DNA of 61,775 bases, the filler included, from Choristocarpus tenellus KU-1152 (taxonomy: Eukaryota > Protista > Phaeophyceae): the NCBI GenBank assembly GCA_964200185.2. It is 8 parts of 8 records of this genome, joined end to end, with 100 filler letters (N's around TTAATTAATTAA, not from the genome) between each part and the next. Parts side by side here need not be neighbours in the genome. Positions count along the whole stretch, not along the records: positions 38,990 to 47,875 come from CAXNAD020004225.1; 7 more parts are not named here. One strand, 5' to 3'. The notes beneath the pieces are model-generated. The model did no database searches. It was not told the origin of the DNA and saw only the letters and a list, made by a program, of their open reading frames with translations. Both the position numbers and the translations under genes were made by a program. Positions 3,201 through 47,975 of the stretch are shown in pieces (the first letter of the stretch is position 1; the number at the start of each line of letters is the position of its first letter).

Positions 3201-3845
3201 AGAAGGGTGTTTTTAGGGATGCATTTATAAAGTGACAAAGGGAGAGGGAAAGGGTCAGGTTTGAAGTATGAAGCATCAGGGCAGAATGCACGTTGCCTCT
3301 AACCCATGTGGATCTCTGTACAGGGTGGTGGACACTGAGCAGGAGGCCATCTAAGTAAGAAAGACCAACACTATTGAACATAAAATTCCTGTCCCAATCT
3401 CTTGGGTTTCAGGATTGTGTCCTTTTTCACAATCCATTCCTTGATAATGCGTACCACACACACATCGCAAAACTTGGTTGACCGTGCCTGAATCAGCTTG
3501 TGGCGTTCAGTTGTATGCCATAGAAGCAATAGTCCACACTAGAAAGGTAGGTGGGCACACTCGATAATTTCTAGCTAACATTTCAGCTCTATTAGACAAC
3601 ACAATACCCGACTAGCCTTGAAGGGTGTCGCCTACACGCTAGATGCTGAGCTCTCACTACTGCTGTTATTGTGTCTTGCCAAAGTGCAATCAATTGTCCC
3701 CCAAGTCGCTGTCCCTCATTTGAATGTTTGCAGATCAGGAAAGGAAATAGCTACGAGGAGGGAGGGGGGGGGGGGNNNNNNNNNNAACACCAGTCCCTCT
3801 CTCTCCCGGCTGTCTCTGGTGTTTGGGTGAAAGGAAAAAAAAGAA

Positions 3846-3883
<38 letters not shown>

Positions 3884-4585
3884 GAGGAAAATGAACATAA
3901 ACTTGACGCGAGAGCAATCTAATTGATCACCTCGATATGCGTCGCTCTTTACATCGATGTCATTTGCCCGGTGTTTCAGGTCATGCTTGAACTTTGCATC
4001 CTCGCCTTTCAATTCGGTTATACCAGGTATCATACTCTGAGCCAGCAAGGTCTTCCTTTTGACCGAAGTCCCACTGTCATCTCCGGCACCAGGTAACATA
4101 CCGATCACACGGGTTGATCCCATTCCAAGATCACCACCTAATCCTCTGGAGAGATCTGCAAGCCCATCGAAATCACGGGATTCGTTGGCGATAGCCTCCG
4201 CTGCTAACTGGTCAAGCGATTTCTCCAAAGGCAGGGAATCTGGTCCCGATGTTGGAGGTTTTGGTTCTGCTCTTTTCTGCGAAACCCCATTCACAAGGCT
4301 AGTACCAGACTCCTCCCAGGTATTAGCCGCCAGGGGAATTACCAATGGCCCTTTTGTCTGTGTCGGTTGCGCACTAACGACTTCTCCGTCCCCAATCCCT
4401 GTGACATAATCCTTGACTCTGACCTCGACCACATTCTGTTCTCCGATGACTGTCGTTCCCAAGGCGGACTTGGGTTTGGTTGGTACAGTCCCACCCTTGT
4501 TCTTTCCCTTGCTCTTGGTGAGGGACATTGAAAATACCTTCTTACCTCCATCAGGTGGTGACACCCTGTACCCATCTTTGGACAT
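276..4585 (-). CDS. Spp2/MOS2/GPKOW-like G-patch splicing factor (spliced, 3' partial)
   Basis: Exons 4585-3931, 3190-3033 and 341-276 have GT-AG borders and consistent phases (1,0). The spliced product reads ...DIDVKSDAYRAVPVAEFGAALLRGMGWTG...PRHFRLGLGAQP, the Spp2/MOS2-type G-patch signature. The third exon is less certain and the gene probably continues off the window. Confidence 0.85.
651..906. repeat. Tandem duplication of a ~129-bp unit ending in an A-run
   Basis: GGGCATTCGCGATTTCAAATTGCACCAAGAAC...TTAACCTTGAAAAAAAA occurs at 651-779 and again at 780-906, near-identical. It lies in an intron of the G-patch gene. Confidence 0.9.
1327..1918 (+). repeat. Telomere-motif (CCCTAA)-containing ~25-bp minisatellite
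   Basis: More than 20 copies of consensus TAACCCTAATAGTACCATATAGCCC with variants, located in an intron. Confidence 0.95.
2303..2638. mobile_element. MITE family A copy (TIR GACTCAAAGTATCTTGGGG...CCCCAAGATACTTTGAGTC)
   Basis: Terminal inverted repeats plus the internal inverted pair GTCCATTCGGG/CCCGAATGGAC. Homologous copies lie at 24625, 35522, 35730 and 50850. This copy spans a 10-N gap with a duplicated left part. Confidence 0.7.
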
Positions 4586-5041
4586 GATCGAGCCTTGAAT
4601 GATGCCAAGCCCACGTGAGACGGTGATGGTAGGCAAAGCAACGCACAAGGACAAGGAACGAGAGTTGTATCGGAACTTCAGGAAAACGACCTCTAAACAA
4701 ACATGATACCTAGACTTACTTACTCGGGGCACAGCAGTGCCATGGTGCCGAAGATAACTTACCAGTGGGATTTCTAAGGCTTGGAGAACCCCCTTTTTGC
4801 ATTGCTCCAAAGTTACTCACAGTGAAACGAGAATGGAGTAAGGAAACAGAGGGAGTTCAATTCTACCTATGGCGTGTTGATGAGGTTTTTTATGAAGACA
4901 CTTCAAATTATAGACCACACTTAGACTCGAAAATCTGTCGGAAGACCTATCCCACGAGTGGAATGACGGGTCCCTGTCTTGCGTAGTTTATTTTGGGTAG
5001 ATTGAGGATGCGGAAGTGAAGCTCTAGTAGAAATTTGTGCA

Positions 5042-38889: not shown

Positions 38890-39297
38890 NNNNNNNNNNN
38901 NNNNNNNNNNNNNNNNNNNNNNNNNNNNNNNNNTTAATTAATTAANNNNNNNNNNNNNNNNNNNNNNNNNNNNNNNNNNNNNNNNNNNNAAAAAAGCATA
39001 ATAAGGAAAATTCATGAAAAGTAAAAAGTACCAAACAACCACCAACCCCAATGCCCCCCCCCCCCGCACACTGCAAAACCCTCCCCCAACCCGAAGACAC
39101 ACACGCCTCTACCCCCGGAAAACCACCCTGGAACTACACGGCCGTAGTGGGAGCGCGACAAATCCGTCACCAATGAACTTTCACCCCCCAAAAAAAAAAA
39201 ACTGGCTCTCTTTGAAAAAAAATATTCTTTACACCTCTCCGTCATGTCCTTTCCTTTTTTTTTGTTTTAAGGGACGGGATTTAGGGTTAAGGGTTAA

Positions 39298-39530
39298 GTT
39301 ATGTAAACGTCTATCTCATCGCACCTTAAACCATGAGGAAAACCTCTCTTATTTAGGTTATGTAAACATCTATCTTATCGCACCTTGAACCGTGAGGAAA
39401 ACCTCTCTTATTTAGGTTATGCAAACGTCTATCTTATCGCACCTTAAGCCATGAGGAAAACCTCTCTTATTTAGGTTATGTAAACGTCTATCTTAACGCA
39501 CCTTGAACCATGAGGAAAACCTCTCTTATT
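39298..39530 (+). repeat. 59-bp tandem repeat, about 4 copies
   Basis: The unit GTTATGTAAACGTCTATCTTATCGCACCTTGAACCATGAGGAAAACCTCTCTTATTTAG starts at 39298, 39357, 39416 and 39475. It is preceded by TTAGGGTTAAGGGTTAAG. Confidence 0.95.
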
Positions 39531-40080
39531 CCACCGCTTGTGCCACAACCAACCACAATGCGGACCGTCTCCCGAACGGGAAAAGCTTGATCGCGGGCTT
39601 TCAATAACCTTTTTCAAAGGGCGGTTCCCCCCCGCCCGGGGGATAAGATAGGGAGGGGAGGAGGGGCTGAGAAGTACACCCTTTTAAACAATGTACAGAG
39701 GTTTCTGAGGCCAAGAAATAAGAGCTACATTTCACTGCGAGCGTCATTATGTCGACTCTTTAGCCTTCTAAAAACAAAGGCAAGAACCATAGTACCCCCC
39801 CTGCCCACAACCTCCTCCATTGAGGCCAGACATCTAAACCCCCACAACTCCCCAAAACGTTTCAATGCACTAGACACGATACTACCTCACCCTCATCTTT
39901 CTTGCAGTAGGTAGCTCTTTTAATTGTTGCCGGAGGAAGGAGGCCTGCCGCCCCTGCCCCCGCCCCTGCTCCCCGCCCTCCCTCTCCCCCCCCTGTGCTC
40001 TCAACACTGTGACAGACCCAAGCTACTCAAATTCGCCCGAGACAAACACAAAGCTAGCAAATGAATCCGCTATACTTTAC

Positions 40081-40376
40081 CTTCTCTGCTCGTCTTTTTC
40101 GATCAGCAATGGTCCTTGCTTGCACCTCAGTTCGACTAAGATGTCCATTAGCATAGAGCTCCTCCAGACGAGCCGGGGAAGGTGCACCTAGAGCAATTAT
40201 GCGCTCCACATTCTTAAGGCCGTTTGGGGGTGGGGGGGGGGGGGGGGGGGTGGGCCGGAGGACTGGGAACGGAAATGGAGGGGGGGGAGGTGGGGGGAGG
40301 GGNNNNNNNNNNTAGCGGGCGCGGGCCCCAGCGCCGGAGCCAGGCGGGCGAGCCCGTGGGGGGCGGGGGGGGCCGT

Positions 40377-40426
<50 letters not shown>

Positions 40427-42966
40427 GGGCACGAAGACTTGGAACTGATATTGATGAGGGTGAAGTGAGAGGTAGGGGACTTGAAGGGGATGCAAGCTGC
40501 AAGCACCAAGCCTGGGGAGCTTCAAAAAAATTGGGAAGGGGAACCAGAGACAAGTTTTTCGTCACAAGGCCAAGCAGTAGCCTGGTGACCCAAGAGCAGT
40601 CATGACTTCCAACAAAGAGCATAGTGAAGAGGAGACTTCTTTATGGGGTTCGTTTCTTCCAGGTGAAAAACAAGATGCGGTCAGTTGTAGGTTCGCCCCA
40701 AGCTCCTGCTTGAACTTTGAACTGACCACAAACAAGCAACAGACTGAGTCTGGCACCTGGAGCAATTTGGCACATCTGTTGAAGTAAACCGAATTCGCGT
40801 TCTTGTTTGGGCTTCCGTCAGGGAGTTCCTCGTGATAGTCTTCCAGTGCAGCCACCAAGATGAAGTTAAGCTGGAGAGCCACATGCAGGCTGGGGGCAAG
40901 GCAACGAAGGCAAGAATGATAGAAGGGAAAGGTCTTTCTCACACAAAACACCTACGCCAACGTAAACAAGTACAACACAGGTAGCAGCTAAATGTGGTGG
41001 GCAATGGCCAAACAGTTTTACCACCTGCAACATCAACAACATGATCAACAACAACATCACTCACAGATCACCACATACACCAACAAAGAATCGCCACACA
41101 CAAGTCTCCCAATCAGCGCGCACTTGGATCCAAGGCACTAATCAAACCTCGAGTTGAACCTGCAAGAAAAAGTTGAAACCGCCTATTTTAGCAACCAGAA
41201 TACATCCACAAAAACACCTGTACTTCAACCTCAATGAACAAGCGAGAAGGGATAAGAAGAGGGGCTGTCCCACCTCTGCTGACACACTACCAACGCAAAC
41301 TGCTCAAGAGCAGAGCTGGGCATATCCACATCGAGGTGAATGATCATGTGCGCCAGCTGGGGCAGGTAGAACTCAATCCCATTGAATACTGTTCTTTCGT
41401 TCGAGTTCTGGTAGATCCTCACAAGGCCAACGGATAGAGACAGCGGGGGGTACAGGTGAGGGCGAGAATGACGTGTGAGGCTGTACACTAAATCCATGGA
41501 TGACAAAGACAAGAATGTGGGGGATTGGTGAGGAGGAGAATGATGTACAGACACTGGCAGTGCTGTGCAGATTGTTTATAGGCGCTTGAAGGCCTTGGGT
41601 AGCTAATCTCGCTGAACATTGCAGCCACTGCTGTTAAATGCTACCAACCGGTTCTATATTCATCTCTTTATCTATCATTTCATTTGCTTGTTGTAGACAG
41701 GGTTGATTGTTGCTTGTTGCGGCATGGCGAGCTATGGTGCACGGTGAGGTAGAAGAAAATGCATGATGGATTAGTATTGCAAGGAGTGTACACAATGGAT
41801 GGATGCTTGTGAATCGTTGTTGTGGACTGAGTTGTGTTATGTTGCCGATGACCATGGATTTCCACCCCCCAAAACATAGATTGCTGGTTGAGAATGATGC
41901 AACCTTCAGTTAGGATGCTTGTGAATTCATTCCAACTATTGACTGACATATTGGGCAGGGGGATGAATGTCGAGGCAGCTGACAACAGCACCACCCCAGC
42001 CCCTCTTGCACTGCATCAGAATTATTCTAGATAAAACAATGTGTAACACTCCTATAGTCCGGGCTGAAGTCACAAGAAAGTGTACCTCAATCAGGAGCTC
42101 ACAAATGGTTTCGACGACGGCATGCTTCTTGCGATTGACCCAGATCAGGGTTGTAACATTGCGCATGTCAAGGTTGCCCTGGTCACCCATCAGCTTGTGG
42201 AAAATGCTGCATAGGTATTAGACGCAGGTCAAGGGGTTACGGTTGTGGGCGGGACAGTTGACGAGGAAAGTGTTGTATTAGGCCAGAAGGAATAACAAGG
42301 GGTTGTTAAAGCGAGGGTGAGCGGTGAGGAGCGAGGATAGGAAAGTCTAACATGCATGGTGTCAGGTGGAAACACTTAAATATCAATTTGACAATGAAAA
42401 CGAATTTGGGGGGCTGGGTAAGGAAAACAGGTGTGAGGTCCACCAAAGCTGAAGAAATACAAAGTTTCTTCTTAGTGTCATATAGTAAGTGTACATCAGA
42501 GGAACATCATCACAAACACCAACTTGTCTACAAGCTGGACAGAGATGCTCCCTCGACAAGCGAAGTGATCGGGGTGTGAATGTGAATGATCATACTTACA
42601 AGGAACATTGGAGGAGATTCGAATAAAACCCGACAATGCCATGTGCCCACCCAGAAAGATCCCTAGGCAAGACAGGGAGTGATCACTAATGCAATATCAG
42701 AAAAATCACCATATTGCAAGAATTTGCAGAGGATCTGGCTCCCCAACTCACTCTTTCAACTCGTCAGACATGGTAGCATGTGCATTGGGGTTATGCACTC
42801 GAAGATCGTGGCCATTGCTGACCACAGTGACAGATCCTTCCCCATTATCAGCCTCGATCTTTACACCTCTACCTCCTTCAGCTTGCTGAGCTGGCTGTAG
42901 GGGGATCTGCGCCACAGAGACATCCAAAACAGGAGATTCATGCCGTTGCAAACCTTCCACCTCCAT
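40081..42966 (-). CDS. Phosphatidylinositol 4-kinase type III beta / Pik1-like, N-terminal helical region (3' partial)
   Basis: Exons 42966-42752, 42206-42140, 41407-41274, 40889-40757 and 40212-40081 splice in phase (2,0,2,0). The product contains GIEFYLPQLAHMII...ALEQFALVVCQQSLHVALQLNFILVAALEDY. The kinase domain is not in the contig. Confidence 0.8.
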
Positions 42967-43502
42967 TTTCTTGATAGTCCGCTTCGGGCCTACTTTGAAG
43001 CTCCGATCCTTAGAGGTCGCCAGCTTTTTTTATTCTCCAGACCTTTTTCAGCTCTCCCAACTTCCTCAATTTTGGACTTTGGAATGGGGGCACCGTTACA
43101 AGCCGATGTATATAGTCGATGTGGGATCAAAAAGAGCACTGTAGGTACACGTCGTCCTGCCACAGTAACAATGGTTCATTCCGAGATTTATGACCTTGCT
43201 CTACCTTAGCTTCTATTTCAGGGCACTCAAGGGCACACTCAATCCCCTTGCCCCCTGCTATCAACGTAAAGGATAGGTGGAACGTTGGTGGGTGTTCTTG
43301 GAGTCGATTCCGCATCTTGCCACTCTTTGATGGAAATTGGCAGTATAGATATACGATACCAATATACGACACAATTATACGGTACCGTATGGTAATGTTC
43401 CAGGAGAGGGAGAATAATATATTAAAAAAATACTACCAAAAAAATAGTTTTGGGTAATATCGTAAGGATAATTTCACACTTCAAATAGGTTGCGAGAGAA
43501 CG

Positions 43503-46140
43503 ATGGCAGGTAAAATGTGTGCATGGTAGCATTGCTGCTATCTTACATCCCGCACTGCTGTACGTATCATGCTTCAGTATACTCATTGATGTCTTGGAAA
43601 CAAAGAACCTTCCCCTTTTTGCTTGTCCCTGACTTATCCTGAAGAGTTCACAACTACAATCAAGGAAAACTATCGCCCCGTGTCGGACAATGAGGCAAGG
43701 CGGTCTGTGCTGGTGGAGGGAATTCCTCTTTTAGACCAAGATTTAACGGAGACTTCCGTTATACAGGTAATTTCAATTTGTCGTGGGGCCGCTTCTAGAT
43801 AGGTTGGCAGCTACAGATATGTCCACTATGGGAGATAGTTTCAAGAGATTGTTTACCTAGAGTAAATCATGGATACTTATCTCCAATTTTCACGACGTAA
43901 AGCAATTCGCTCCCTAATCCTCAGGTATTTTCAACCTACGGGGATATATCGAAGCTACTGCTCCAGACTCATGGAGATGGTGAGTTGTGTAATTTGTACT
44001 CCTTGGGGATAAGAACATGTAAACCACATCGAGATCAAGAGCGTAATGCCCCCAAGATCACTGTCGTCCTAAAGCAATAATGTCAATGCATTGACATTAT
44101 GTGGTACGGTGGTACTTCCAGGGCTTTGAAGCTTTTAGGTTTGACCTCTGTTTGGGATGTGTTTCCCGGCGCTTGGAATCCAACAGCCAGGTTACAATTC
44201 TTCCTCAGAACACACGTACAGATATATGTTAACATCCTCTATAACGTACCAATCTGTGACTAAATCTGCCTGACGTGAAAACAGGGACCACGCAAAGGGC
44301 CGTGGTTGTTTTTGGCGACGAGGAAGGAGCAAAAACTGCTCTCCAGGTGGATGCAACATTTATGCCTGTGCATTTCTTCCTGTTGCATACCTATGTTCCA
44401 TAGTATTTTTTTTTATGCCAAATCTCAAGTACAATCTTTTGGCATGCATGAAGTCATGTGCAGTATAACTTTCAGCCTTAACGACCTTCAGCGTATATTA
44501 ATATAAAATTGATCCCAGTCAAGGTTTGTGGGTTGAGCTTGTAGGAATTTCTTGTAAAATGTGTGTGGATGCATCTGCACACCCTAGTTTCTTGTCTCTC
44601 CGTCCAAGTCATGACCCTCTCACACATGTGCATTACGTAATGTCTAAATTTACGTGTTTTGTCAGGTCAACGGACGCGACATCCTTGGCAAACCTGTCAC
44701 TGTATCCCTCGCCGCGTCACTCCTTCAGGAGCAGGAAGTTAGTAACCCCACGCCCCAAGGAGGTACAGGTACATCCCAATGTTGCCTCAAACCCCTCTAA
44801 GAGCAAGTATTTGACAGTATGAACTGTATAGGAAAAAATTAGAGCGTCTTTTTGGTACCGTTTTCATGTTCTGTACTTGATGTGCTTGTTGTCTGACATC
44901 CCCAAGTCTAAAGTACTACTGTTGCTCTATGATCTCAGCACTGTATTTTACGACCAACACTTGTGTTGTGGAGTGCTATGGTAGACTTGCCCCCTCCTTA
45001 AAAGGTATACCTTTTTGTGACAGTCGTCCCCTCTGCAAGTACAGAAGAAACATGCGCTCAAGGTGCTTGGGAGTGTGCAGGGTTTCGATGTGTACCACTC
45101 TTGTTCCACAGAAAAACTTTTTTTTCAGGGGAGGGGGGGGGGAGGGGGACACACAACAAATCCACAAGTAGTCGACCCTTGACGGTTTTACCGCTACATA
45201 CTGTAGGTCCTTTTTGTGCACCTTATTTATCCTCCCCTGTAACAGTCTCAGCTAGCATTGAGAATCGCAATTACTCAATTACAGCACACCCATAATAAAA
45301 ACTGAAAAAAATTGAGGGGTAAATCTCCTTTTTTTGTGATTTTGTGTGAACAAAAAAATAATGCGTGCTGTGTGCATCTTCTGCGGGGCTCGACGGTTGG
45401 GGTGCGTCCATTCACGCCTTCCATTTTTTGCAAACGTTGTACATTTCTAGTTGCTATAGTTCATATATTCTACAGATGGACCAACTTAGCGACTCCTCAA
45501 GTTCTATGTAAGAAGTGGTCCTCCTGCAATCTTCTGGAAACACAAAACAAAAGGCACAATTCACATGAAACTCAGAATACCACAAGTAAACAAGAGTGTC
45601 GAAAACAAAATGCTCATTTCACACACACACACACACACACAAAAGAGAAGTACCTGTGAATTTTACTGGTCGATTTAACTCAAAGCTCATCAATGATTTC
45701 ACTTTTTGATTCGCGACACGAGTCTTCATCCCTACCCTTTCATCCACACGCCATCGCACTGTATAGAAAACCACCTACCCCTCATTGTTGTTGCACTGTG
45801 ATAACACTGCCGGGTTGACGAAACTGGTGACTGCCTCAGAACCATCGCAGCCAGCCCGCCGGTTCACCAGTGCAGAGCTCGTGGGGAACTGGCTGGCGCA
45901 GGGAATCCTGCTGGGTAAGAAGGGGGTGGCACACATCCAGGAGTTTGACGAGAAAATCGGCGTGTCATCAGCGGCTACCTCGTTCTTCGTGCAGGTGTGT
46001 GGGCCTGTGGGGAAGGGGATGAAGGTGGAGACTTGACTTTGCTGGCGACAGGATGCACTAGCGAGGAAGCTTCATGGCAAAGAGGCCATGCAAAGGGGCT
46101 TGGGGTAGTGTAGTGTGGAGTACAGGAACCTGGAACGAGC

Positions 46141-46188
<48 letters not shown>

Positions 46189-46288
46189 GGGGGGGGGGGA
46201 AAAGGGGGAAAAAAAAAAAAAAATAATATTTTTTAGTTTTTTGTTGGTTGTTCTANNNNNNNNNNGGGGTGTGGGAGTGTGGGGAGGA

Positions 46289-46333
<45 letters not shown>

Positions 46334-46803
46334 TTCTTGGGCTGCTTTGTTTGTGATTGACATGCGTGAATAAAAAAAACATTTATCTTTGTAGAGGTAA
46401 TATGTGTATGTCCTACATTGGACTGGGTCAGGCTACGGTAGTGATGGACAAGCACACTAGCATGCTGAATAGGGACATGGGTTGTAGCGATTGGAAGAAT
46501 ATTTATTTTATGGGAACGGAACGATTTTGTGATTTGTGTTCTTTCACCTCAATGATGTGGTTGGAAGTGCTTGTCTGTCCCCATTTGTGCGGTGTTCTGT
46601 CCGCTATTTATACCCCCAACAGAGTTTTGTTTGTATCGTGCGTACTTGGAAGTGTGACTGGATCTGTAACTGAATCTGTAACTGTAACCTGGGAACACTG
46701 TGTTTGGTTTTCTAAGGACTTGTATCCTGATGTAAGAGGGATTTCGGGGCTGAATGGGTACCAAAATGTGACTGAATTATGAACGGGCTACTCGCTATTC
46801 CTG

Positions 46804-46835
<32 letters not shown>

Positions 46836-47663
46836 TTTACGACACTAATAACTTATGAATCTGCCTATTATTTTAGCATCTGCATCGCCAGCAAGGCTTA
46901 GACTATTAAAACAAATTGGCATCACCCCTGACCAAGTCATTCCTTCTGATATAGATAAAACCAAATCCCCAAAAGAATCTCCAAGAAGATTCGCTGAAAG
47001 GCTAGCTTTCGAAAAAGCAACTACGATTGCAAACACAATTGAAAAAGGAATTATTATTGGAGCTGATACTGTCCCAGTCGTTGGAAGATCAATAATGAGA
47101 AAAACAGCCAACCGAGATGATATAAGAAAAAGTTTAGAATTGATTTCAAACAGAAGACATAAAATCTACACAGGCGTATCCGTTATAAAAAAGTATGGTT
47201 CGGAATATAGAACTTTAAAGCGCGTAGTCAAATCAACGCTTAAATTTAAAAAACTGTCAAAAGCTGAAATAGACTACTACTGCACACTTGAAGAAGGCAT
47301 TGAAAAAGCAGGAGGTTATACTGCATCTGGTTATGCAGAGTCATATATCTCATTCCTATCAGGATCGTTCTCCAACATAATTGGGCTTCCATTATTTGAA
47401 ACTATGAATATGCTAAATAGTGTTGGTTTTTATGTCCGACACAAATAAGCCCTATTCTATAAATTAAATTATTTTTTTGTTAATAAACACTAGCTAACCA
47501 TTGCTTTTTAATACTCACTTACCCCATCTTTCCATCTCCACTGGCAACAATCTGAGCAGATAAAGACAAGTGCTCGTGGACTGGACGAGACACACCACAT
47601 CAGTGATACTCTGTCCCAAGCAGCCCGGAATGCCGGTGCCCGTGCTCAGGAGATCGACACCAA
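43503..47663 (+). CDS. RRM protein, BPA1/Vip1-like (3' partial)
   Basis: Exons 43503-43509, 43645-43766, 43925-43979, 44285-44346, 44666-44762, 45840-45994 and 47560-47663 splice in phase. An RRM (SVLVEGIP...VFSTYGDI...AVVVF...ALQVNGRDILGKPVTV) is followed by WLAQGILLGKKGVAHIQEFDEKIGVS and LDETHHIS repeats. Confidence 0.8.
46855..47448 (+). CDS. maf: Maf-family nucleoside triphosphate pyrophosphatase, Rickettsiaceae-like, nested in a host intron
   Basis: A 197-aa intronless ORF with IILASASPAR, EKA, IIIGADTV, H..YTGV, EG..KAGGY and SGSFSNIIGLPLFET. GC is about 36% by hand count, clearly lower than the flanking host exons. Confidence 0.93.
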   Translation: MNLPIILASASPARLRLLKQIGITPDQVIPSDIDKTKSPKESPRRFAERLAFEKATTIANTIEKGIIIGADTVPVVGRSIMRKTANRDDIRKSLELISNRRHKIYTGVSVIKKYGSEYRTLKRVVKSTLKFKKLSKAEIDYYCTLEEGIEKAGGYTASGYAESYISFLSGSFSNIIGLPLFETMNMLNSVGFYVRHK

Positions 47664-47975
47664 GTGTGTAAAAGGATGTTATTTGTTTGTCCTGTCTGGT
47701 TTCCTCTTCCTTTTGACCTACAGCTGCAGTACGGTCTTGTGCCTATGTGCGCGCGCGTGTGTGTGTGTGCAAGATGTTATGTCGGTTATCTTATGTTCTA
47801 TTACGGCAACCTTTCTGGTATGCCCCCCCGACCCCCCCCCCCCCCACCCCATCACCCCCCCCCACCCCCCCACCCNNNNNNNNNNNNNNNNNNNNNNNNN
47901 NNNNNNNNNNNNNNNNNNNTTAATTAATTAANNNNNNNNNNNNNNNNNNNNNNNNNNNNNNNNNNNNNNNNNNNN

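Follow-up and report, generated by a model that had tools for sequence, protein, structure and literature searches.

Introduction

Rickettsiaceae are obligately intracellular bacteria. That pieces of such inhabitants end up in the genome of the host cell is well known from Wolbachia, the DNA of which is found inserted in insects and nematodes, and from the nuclear copies of mitochondrial and plastid DNA (NUMTs and NUPTs). Inserts of this kind lack the hallmarks of transposons, often reside in introns or between genes and are mostly non-functional. The locus described here resembles them in being a fragment from an intracellular bacterium that was inserted without transposon hallmarks. It differs in the family of the donor and in a host that is evidently not of the arthropod style, and it comprises a single small fragment.

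The closest precedent is Volvox carteri. Its nuclear genome contains a rickettsial insert of ~9 kb with four gene-like regions, which was compared across 13 strains (2015, PMC4324946). There as here, DNA of Rickettsiaceae in the nucleus of a eukaryotic microbe or alga is read as the trace of a past endosymbiont, and the transfer from bacterium to host is thus of a kind already known. Unlike the Volvox insert, the present one measures 677 bp, comprises one intact gene and lies in a spliced intron.

Few such nuclear traces have been documented. The present one is a base-resolved case of bacterial DNA within a eukaryotic nuclear gene that does no harm there, with exact break-points, a microsatellite at one of them and preserved splicing. 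What sets it apart are the base-level break-points, its place within an intron that functions and the fact that the donor clade has been seen only in metagenomes. If the host is an alga or a protist, the insert is a datable molecular trace of an association with Rickettsiaceae outside the arthropods, and the occupied or empty site offers a simple PCR marker for when this association existed.

The window, i.e., the whole stretch of DNA that was analysed, comprises 61,775 nucleotides, filler included, from Choristocarpus tenellus KU-1152. The piece studied is window 38990-47875, one 8,886-bp record (contig CAXNAD020004225.1 of assembly GCA_964200185.2), and all coordinates are those of the window. 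We consider it highly probable that a fragment of a Rickettsiaceae chromosome was captured in a nuclear intron of the host, where it now probably is a recent, passive passenger.

The bacterial segment

The Rickettsiaceae-derived segment extends over 677 bp of the plus strand (46833..47509). Its bounds are exact against the bacterial contigs, both in BLASTN and in a DNA alignment (A1). A preceding sequence-only reading had estimated an insert of ~0.7 kb at 46828-47515; the size stands, the bounds have to be corrected to those of the homology. By BLASTN, the segment is 91% identical to the metagenome contigs L001-L004 and 78-79% identical to L005, L007 and L009, which include Rickettsiaceae metagenome-assembled genomes (MAGs). 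Its GC content is 34.1% (34% when rounded) versus 48.0% in the rest of the piece.

The segment begins with a 16-nt remnant of the 3' end of infA, the gene of IF-1 (46833..46848, plus strand), which reads ..ILRH plus a stop codon and corresponds in the alignment to the terminus of the PF01176 gene of L001-L006. The remainder of infA is missing, and (CA)n takes its place upstream of 46833. A 6-nt spacer separates the infA tail from maf, and maf is followed by a bacterial 3' spacer of 61 nt (47449..47509, plus strand; alignment A1), at the end of which the homology stops. Because the homology spans exactly 46833-47509, the segment consists of the infA tail, the 6-nt spacer, maf and the 61-nt spacer. 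These contents are collinear with the bacterial gene order infA-maf-tRNA-Leu-mgtE, and the infA tail, the short spacer and the 61 nt after maf find their counterparts in L001-L009. In L001-L006 the distance between infA and maf is 5-6 nt, except that the truncated infA of L004 is 77 nt away; in this contig tRNA-Leu lies at 4739-4827 and is followed by mgtE. The contigs bearing the bacterial relatives of maf are up to 117 kb long and carry ordinary bacterial genes. As judged from homology at the DNA level, which includes the non-coding flanks and the infA tail, the segment is of bacterial origin. A search of the whole piece with BLASTN and TBLASTX against all bacterial loci fetched disclosed no credible further bacterial DNA outside 46833-47509. 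A 24-aa fragment that TBLASTX reported at 39529-39600 was regarded as noise.

L004 deserves a side remark. The gene call for its infA gives no more than 47 residues, and ~2 kb upstream lies a DDE transposase (1490-1954 and 3765-3908). If the donor clade is subject to gene erosion and to the activity of insertion sequences, this would be consistent with a life restricted to hosts.

The maf gene and its product

The open reading frame of maf (46855..47448, plus strand) is intact; it has 594 nt, 197 codons and 35.7% GC and is predicted to encode a nucleoside triphosphate pyrophosphatase of the Maf family. The intronless Maf frame of 594 nt and ~36% GC that had been read from the sequence was thereby recovered in full. 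Pfam PF02545 (Maf) is matched with an E value of 5.5e-49 and 166.8 bits (cut-off 27), residues 4-189 covering positions 1-186 of the 187 of the profile, and TIGR00172 is passed with 137.5 bits (cut-off 117.15). The family motifs, SxSPxR (here SASPAR), E41, K54, D71 of GADT and K83, are conserved and align with those of E. coli YhdE (4p0e); SxSPxR, the conserved glutamate, the lysine and the aspartate of GADT are the active-site motifs of the family. By its full-length profile match and these motifs, the predicted protein qualifies as a member of the Maf family. Compared with six bacterial orthologues of equal length, the frame contains neither a frameshift nor a stop.

YhdE and YceF of E. coli (PDB 4p0e and 4p0u) and Maf of B. 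subtilis (1ex2) share family, length and aligned motifs with the window protein at E values of about 8e-24. The glutamine in the GIQG motif of YhdE is replaced by serine in the window Maf (TASG) and in its nearest bacterial relatives, L001-L004 (VSG). Because the latter have it too, the exchange is a trait of the lineage and not a sign of decay. TASG is encoded at 47314-47325 (Maf residues about 154-157), and the glutamine is retained in more distant relatives such as L005. The exchange may mark a shifted substrate preference in a subclade of the Rickettsiaceae.

The Maf domain of the eukaryotic ASMTL (PDB 2p5x) belongs to the same Pfam family (E 3e-20), but is far more distant from the window Maf than the bacterial relatives, which are 81-91% identical. 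An origin from eukaryotic Maf/ASMTL was ruled out by this identity to bacterial contigs and by the attached bacterial flanking DNA. The window Maf is not of the eukaryotic type, because it carries the latter.

The host intron and its splicing

The flanks of the segment are genuine eukaryotic nuclear DNA, as seen from a spliced GT..AG exon and from a PI4K-like multi-exon model on the same contig. Around the insert, a multi-exon gene with GT..AG introns runs on the plus strand. The locus was compared with sequencing runs of one study. Three of these (X1, X2 and X3) represent three samples of one organism (A) and contain 87-100% of the sampled words of 46340-47760. X1 and X3 are DNA-like, i.e., they lack the spliced form and their contigs cross exon borders; X2 is RNA-like.

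The GT..AG intron that houses the insert (45995..47559, plus strand) is defined by spliced cDNA-like contigs in X2 and in a further run, X4; a 10-N scaffold gap lies within it. The upstream exon (45767..45994, plus strand; ..GVSSAATSFFVQ) takes its 3' end from the cDNA consensus and its likely 5' end from an AG at 45765-45766 and the open frame. The consensus of the loose ends of the cDNA contigs equals 45961-45990, i.e., it falls into this upstream exon. The downstream exon (47560..47665, plus strand; IKTSARGLDETHHISDTLSQAARNAGARAQEIDTK..) is contained in cDNA-like contigs of X2 and X4 that cover 47556-47665 and run on at both ends into further exon or coding sequence. Upstream exon and intron both have 'gcag' as their last letters; for this reason the join is placed at 45994|47560, and it is in frame (..SFFVQ|IKTSARG..). 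The intron 45995-47559 with its in-phase join ..SFFVQ|IKTSARGLDETHHIS.., originally deduced by reading alone, is thus borne out by the cDNA-like contigs of X2 and X4.

In X2 the spliced exon reaches a depth of about 5,700, the maf-bearing contig one of 31.5, which is an about 180-fold difference. As spliced contigs join 45994 to 47560 at so much greater a depth, the intron is real and is efficiently removed. The bacterial segment stops 50 nt short of the 3' splice site. It is directly followed by the 3' end of the intron (47510..47559, plus strand; contigs of X1, X2 and X3) with an intact pyrimidine-rich tract and the AG acceptor.

The host gene had been addressed as an RRM gene. When five exons were searched singly with Pfam, no RRM match was obtained, and a match to NCBP3 stayed below threshold. 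The Atlas feature search with a 76-aa exon yielded weak leads (0.76-0.86) to eukaryotic RRM-domain proteins. The C-terminal exons of the host gene may resemble RRM proteins of the Vip1/BPA1 type.

Some observations on transcript depth may be added. In X2 the left part of the intron (46372-46794) is ~5x deeper than the maf part (46843-47585), 154.6 versus 31.5; in the DNA-like runs both parts are equally deep. The excess could stem from a transcript of its own, from an intron piece that is stable or from repetitive sequence. X4, the only run besides these three and labelled as another organism (B), contains an identical spliced exon (47556-47665) at a depth of 4, compared with about 5,700 in X2 of the same study, and of this locus it contains the spliced exon only. 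It could reflect a close relative or a carry-over between libraries.

The junctions

Between maf and the downstream exon the sequence is continuous, without N or gap, as already noted from the sequence. The right junction is crossed with 0 mismatches by single contigs assembled separately from the three runs: 46843-47760 in X1, 46843-47585 in X2 and 47386-47760 in X3. The RNA-like X2 contains the same contig from maf to exon, and the insert therefore belongs to the pre-mRNA. In the DNA-like runs, the depth does not step at this junction, as far as contig-mean k-mer depths, a coarse measure, can tell (16.6 versus 24.2 in X1; about 3.7-5.8 on both sides in X3). At 47509, no run contig of X1-X3 leaves the insert toward the bacterial tRNA-Leu.

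The left junction is a microsatellite, (CA)n(TA)n, at 46804..46832 (no strand assigned), which is absent from the bacterial homologues; the (CA)n reported to abut the insert is therefore indeed there. By contig coordinates, the contigs of X1 and X2 start near 46809; in consequence, they carry some 24 nt of the (CA)n(TA)n repeat, which is absent from the bacterial genomes. The bacterial part is thus joined to the repeat within contigs. Of the spanning of both junctions, the test proposed at the outset, run contigs supply the right junction and, on the left, the part up to the repeat: no run contig crosses the microsatellite into unique host intron; all of them stop there and overlap by about 20 nt of CA repeat only. 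Further upstream in the same intron lies the 10-N scaffold gap (46256-46265), flanked by poly-G of 45 and 42 nt, and the link between the left intron flank and the upstream exon passes solely through this gap.

Poly-G of 19-49 nt flanks both 10-N gaps of the piece (40303-40312 and 46256-46265, the poly-G lying within 40232-40425 and 46143-46332). It looks like read artefacts of two-colour chemistry that were built into the scaffold, so that the letters beside either gap should not be relied upon. X3 also contains a 59-nt contig with a depth of 2.4, in which a match to 42 nt of maf (47232-47273), with 2 differences, gives way to unrelated letters (GCCAAATCATTTGAGAT). Erroneous sequencing might account for it, as might a trace of a second maf-like copy or of the bacterium itself.

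One of the three runs is probably the source of the assembly, and perhaps all represent one strain. Coming from one study and perhaps one strain, X1-X3 demonstrate the presence of the junction in the reads but not the fixation of the insert in the species.

The donor

The proteins nearest to the window Maf are 91-80% identical and stem from metagenome and run assemblies. When prokaryotes were scanned with a single representative genome for each species, two MAGs labelled 'Rickettsiaceae bacterium' (L009 and L010 in GTDB) came closest with 81-82% amino acid identity; the other matches of alphaproteobacterial type in that scan reached 43-49%. A maximum likelihood tree was built from 134 Maf proteins, i.e., the window protein, the matches of the similarity search with at least 170 aa and 16 genome loci. 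Therein the window Maf is sister to P0002 and P0003 (SH-aLRT 97), and these three are nested in a clade with both Rickettsiaceae MAGs. This clade, in turn, lies inside one of 120 rows (support 99) that also contains Ca. Trichorickettsia and a Rickettsia endosymbiont. Outside remain 13 other rows labelled as alphaproteobacterial or Bdellovibrionota and, on a long branch, a MAG labelled 'Rickettsiales' (L021). The expected nesting in Rickettsiaceae was hence found; the placement is one by the depositors' MAG labels and a single protein of 198 columns.

A second protein points the same way. The PNPase encoded on the 117-kb contig of the relative L005 is 66-75% identical to that of Rickettsiaceae MAGs and 62-64% identical to that of Tisiphia, Rickettsia and Trichorickettsia. 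From the Maf tree, the identities to the MAGs and the PNPase of L005, the donor is to be sought in an uncultured lineage of Rickettsiaceae. The named genera Tisiphia, Rickettsia and Trichorickettsia are at 54-64% identity, when the matches of Maf and of the L005 PNPase are taken together. Megaira, mentioned earlier as a genus that infects algae, did not appear by name among the matches of either protein, most of which are nameless. The donor clade, with 81-91% Maf identity, is known from metagenomes alone; for this reason the insert links an uncultured clade of Rickettsiaceae to a concrete host.

Origin, age and function

How might the segment have come to its place? A piece of the chromosome of an uncultured Rickettsiaceae, comprising the infA tail, the whole maf and part of the following spacer, would have been captured into the nuclear genome. 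It would have landed beside (CA)n(TA)n, within an intron that belongs to an expressed multi-exon gene, 50 nt short of the 3' splice site. DNA released from an intracellular bacterium was probably joined in when a double-strand break was repaired by end-joining. The insert is now transcribed in the pre-mRNA and spliced out, as X2 shows, and the host gene works normally. Neither a target-site duplication nor terminal inverted repeats were detected around the insert. Insertion of the transposon type was ruled out on these grounds; their absence would fit a capture by end-joining rather than transposition.

The age can be judged from the substitutions. When the changes on the window branch were polarised with three outgroups, 8 proved to be synonymous and 10 non-synonymous. 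This corresponds to an omega of about 0.38, compared with one of about 0.20 on the bacterial sister branch. The non-synonymous changes on the window branch are fewer than expected under neutrality (one-sided binomial p 0.039). Because of this deficit, the 9% that separate the window maf from the closest relative sampled appear for the most part to have arisen under selection in bacteria, and therefore little neutral decay since the insertion is to be assumed. The intact frame, the unaltered AT-rich composition and the lack of an excess of amino acid changes likewise speak for a young insertion. 'Recent' here is a matter of such indirect signs, no relative having shown an empty site and a donor with a 100% match being outside the sampled genomes. 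The intact maf suggests youth of the transfer, not use by the host, and nothing points to an expression of Maf by the latter.

Could the segment have got there in the computer? Reads of co-occurring Rickettsiaceae might have been misjoined into a host contig, and the scaffold, built from short reads, with two 10-N gaps and long poly-G, is of a kind that invites such suspicion, as does a left junction placed in a microsatellite at which every run contig comes to an end. Two wrong joins would, however, be needed, which moreover had to place 677 bp precisely within one intron. The right junction was rebuilt mismatch-free in three separate run assemblies, one of them RNA-like, no branch leads off to a bacterial continuation at 47509, and the depths in X1 and X3 match. 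Also, in the very same contigs the bacterial part is attached to (CA)n(TA)n, a repeat not present in its bacterial homologues. With the right junction in three runs, matching depths, no bacterial branch and the contig of X2, a chimeric assembly is very unlikely. Less probable still is that the host expresses maf, be it as a nested gene or by intron retention, and that selection keeps it. The frame is complete, of course, the motif residues are retained, maf has the orientation of the host gene, and the window branch has an omega of less than 1. Yet an omega below 1 is equally expected if nearly all of the divergence from the nearest relative sampled preceded the transfer and arose in bacteria, where the sister branch shows about 0.2. 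In the RNA-like run, moreover, the maf contig is about 180x shallower than the spliced exon and shallower even than the contig of the left intron part (31.5 versus 154.6), and the gene displays no adaptation of eukaryotic style: its GC content is bacterial, it has no intron, and bacterial spacer is still attached to it.

The least probable reading accepts the insertion as real and attributes the DNA to Rickettsiaceae of a prey organism or another eukaryote, in which case it would tell nothing of an infection of this lineage, or assigns the contig itself to a contaminating eukaryote. That the view is confined to one 8.9-kb contig may be taken in its favour. Rickettsiaceae being obligately intracellular, however, infection of the cell itself is the simplest route to repeated close contact with the nucleus. 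The host gene, moreover, attains a depth of about 5,700 in the RNA-like run, which is what the main organism (A) should show. Somewhat apart stands the idea, to which we concede a small chance, that maf is a very young acquisition before or during domestication, translated from retained-intron or nested transcripts, or else the tip of a larger, ongoing flow of DNA from a still resident, undescribed Rickettsiaceae symbiont into the nucleus of this host. A captured Rickettsiaceae fragment thus continues to be our preferred explanation. The nuclear insertion is very probably real; it is probably recent and probably a passive passenger of its intron. The DNA homology, the right junction in three runs and the splicing agree with the recent insertion of endosymbiont DNA into a host nuclear intron that had been proposed from the sequence, and it is a reasonable inference that the insertion records an infection of the host lineage by Rickettsiaceae.

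Other features of the piece

Far from the insert, on the minus strand, a multi-exon gene model of 290 residues (39471-42966) gives a faint Pfam match to PI4KB-PIK1; one exon of this PI4K-like model, at about 41300-41440, reads ..NGIEFYLPQLAHMIIHL.. A unit of ~60 nt (..gttatgtaaacgtctatcttatcgcaccttgaaccatgaggaaaacctctcttatttag..) was seen by eye in about four head-to-tail copies at 39290-39530, and these tandem copies are preceded by a short telomere-like stretch, tttagggttaagggttaag.
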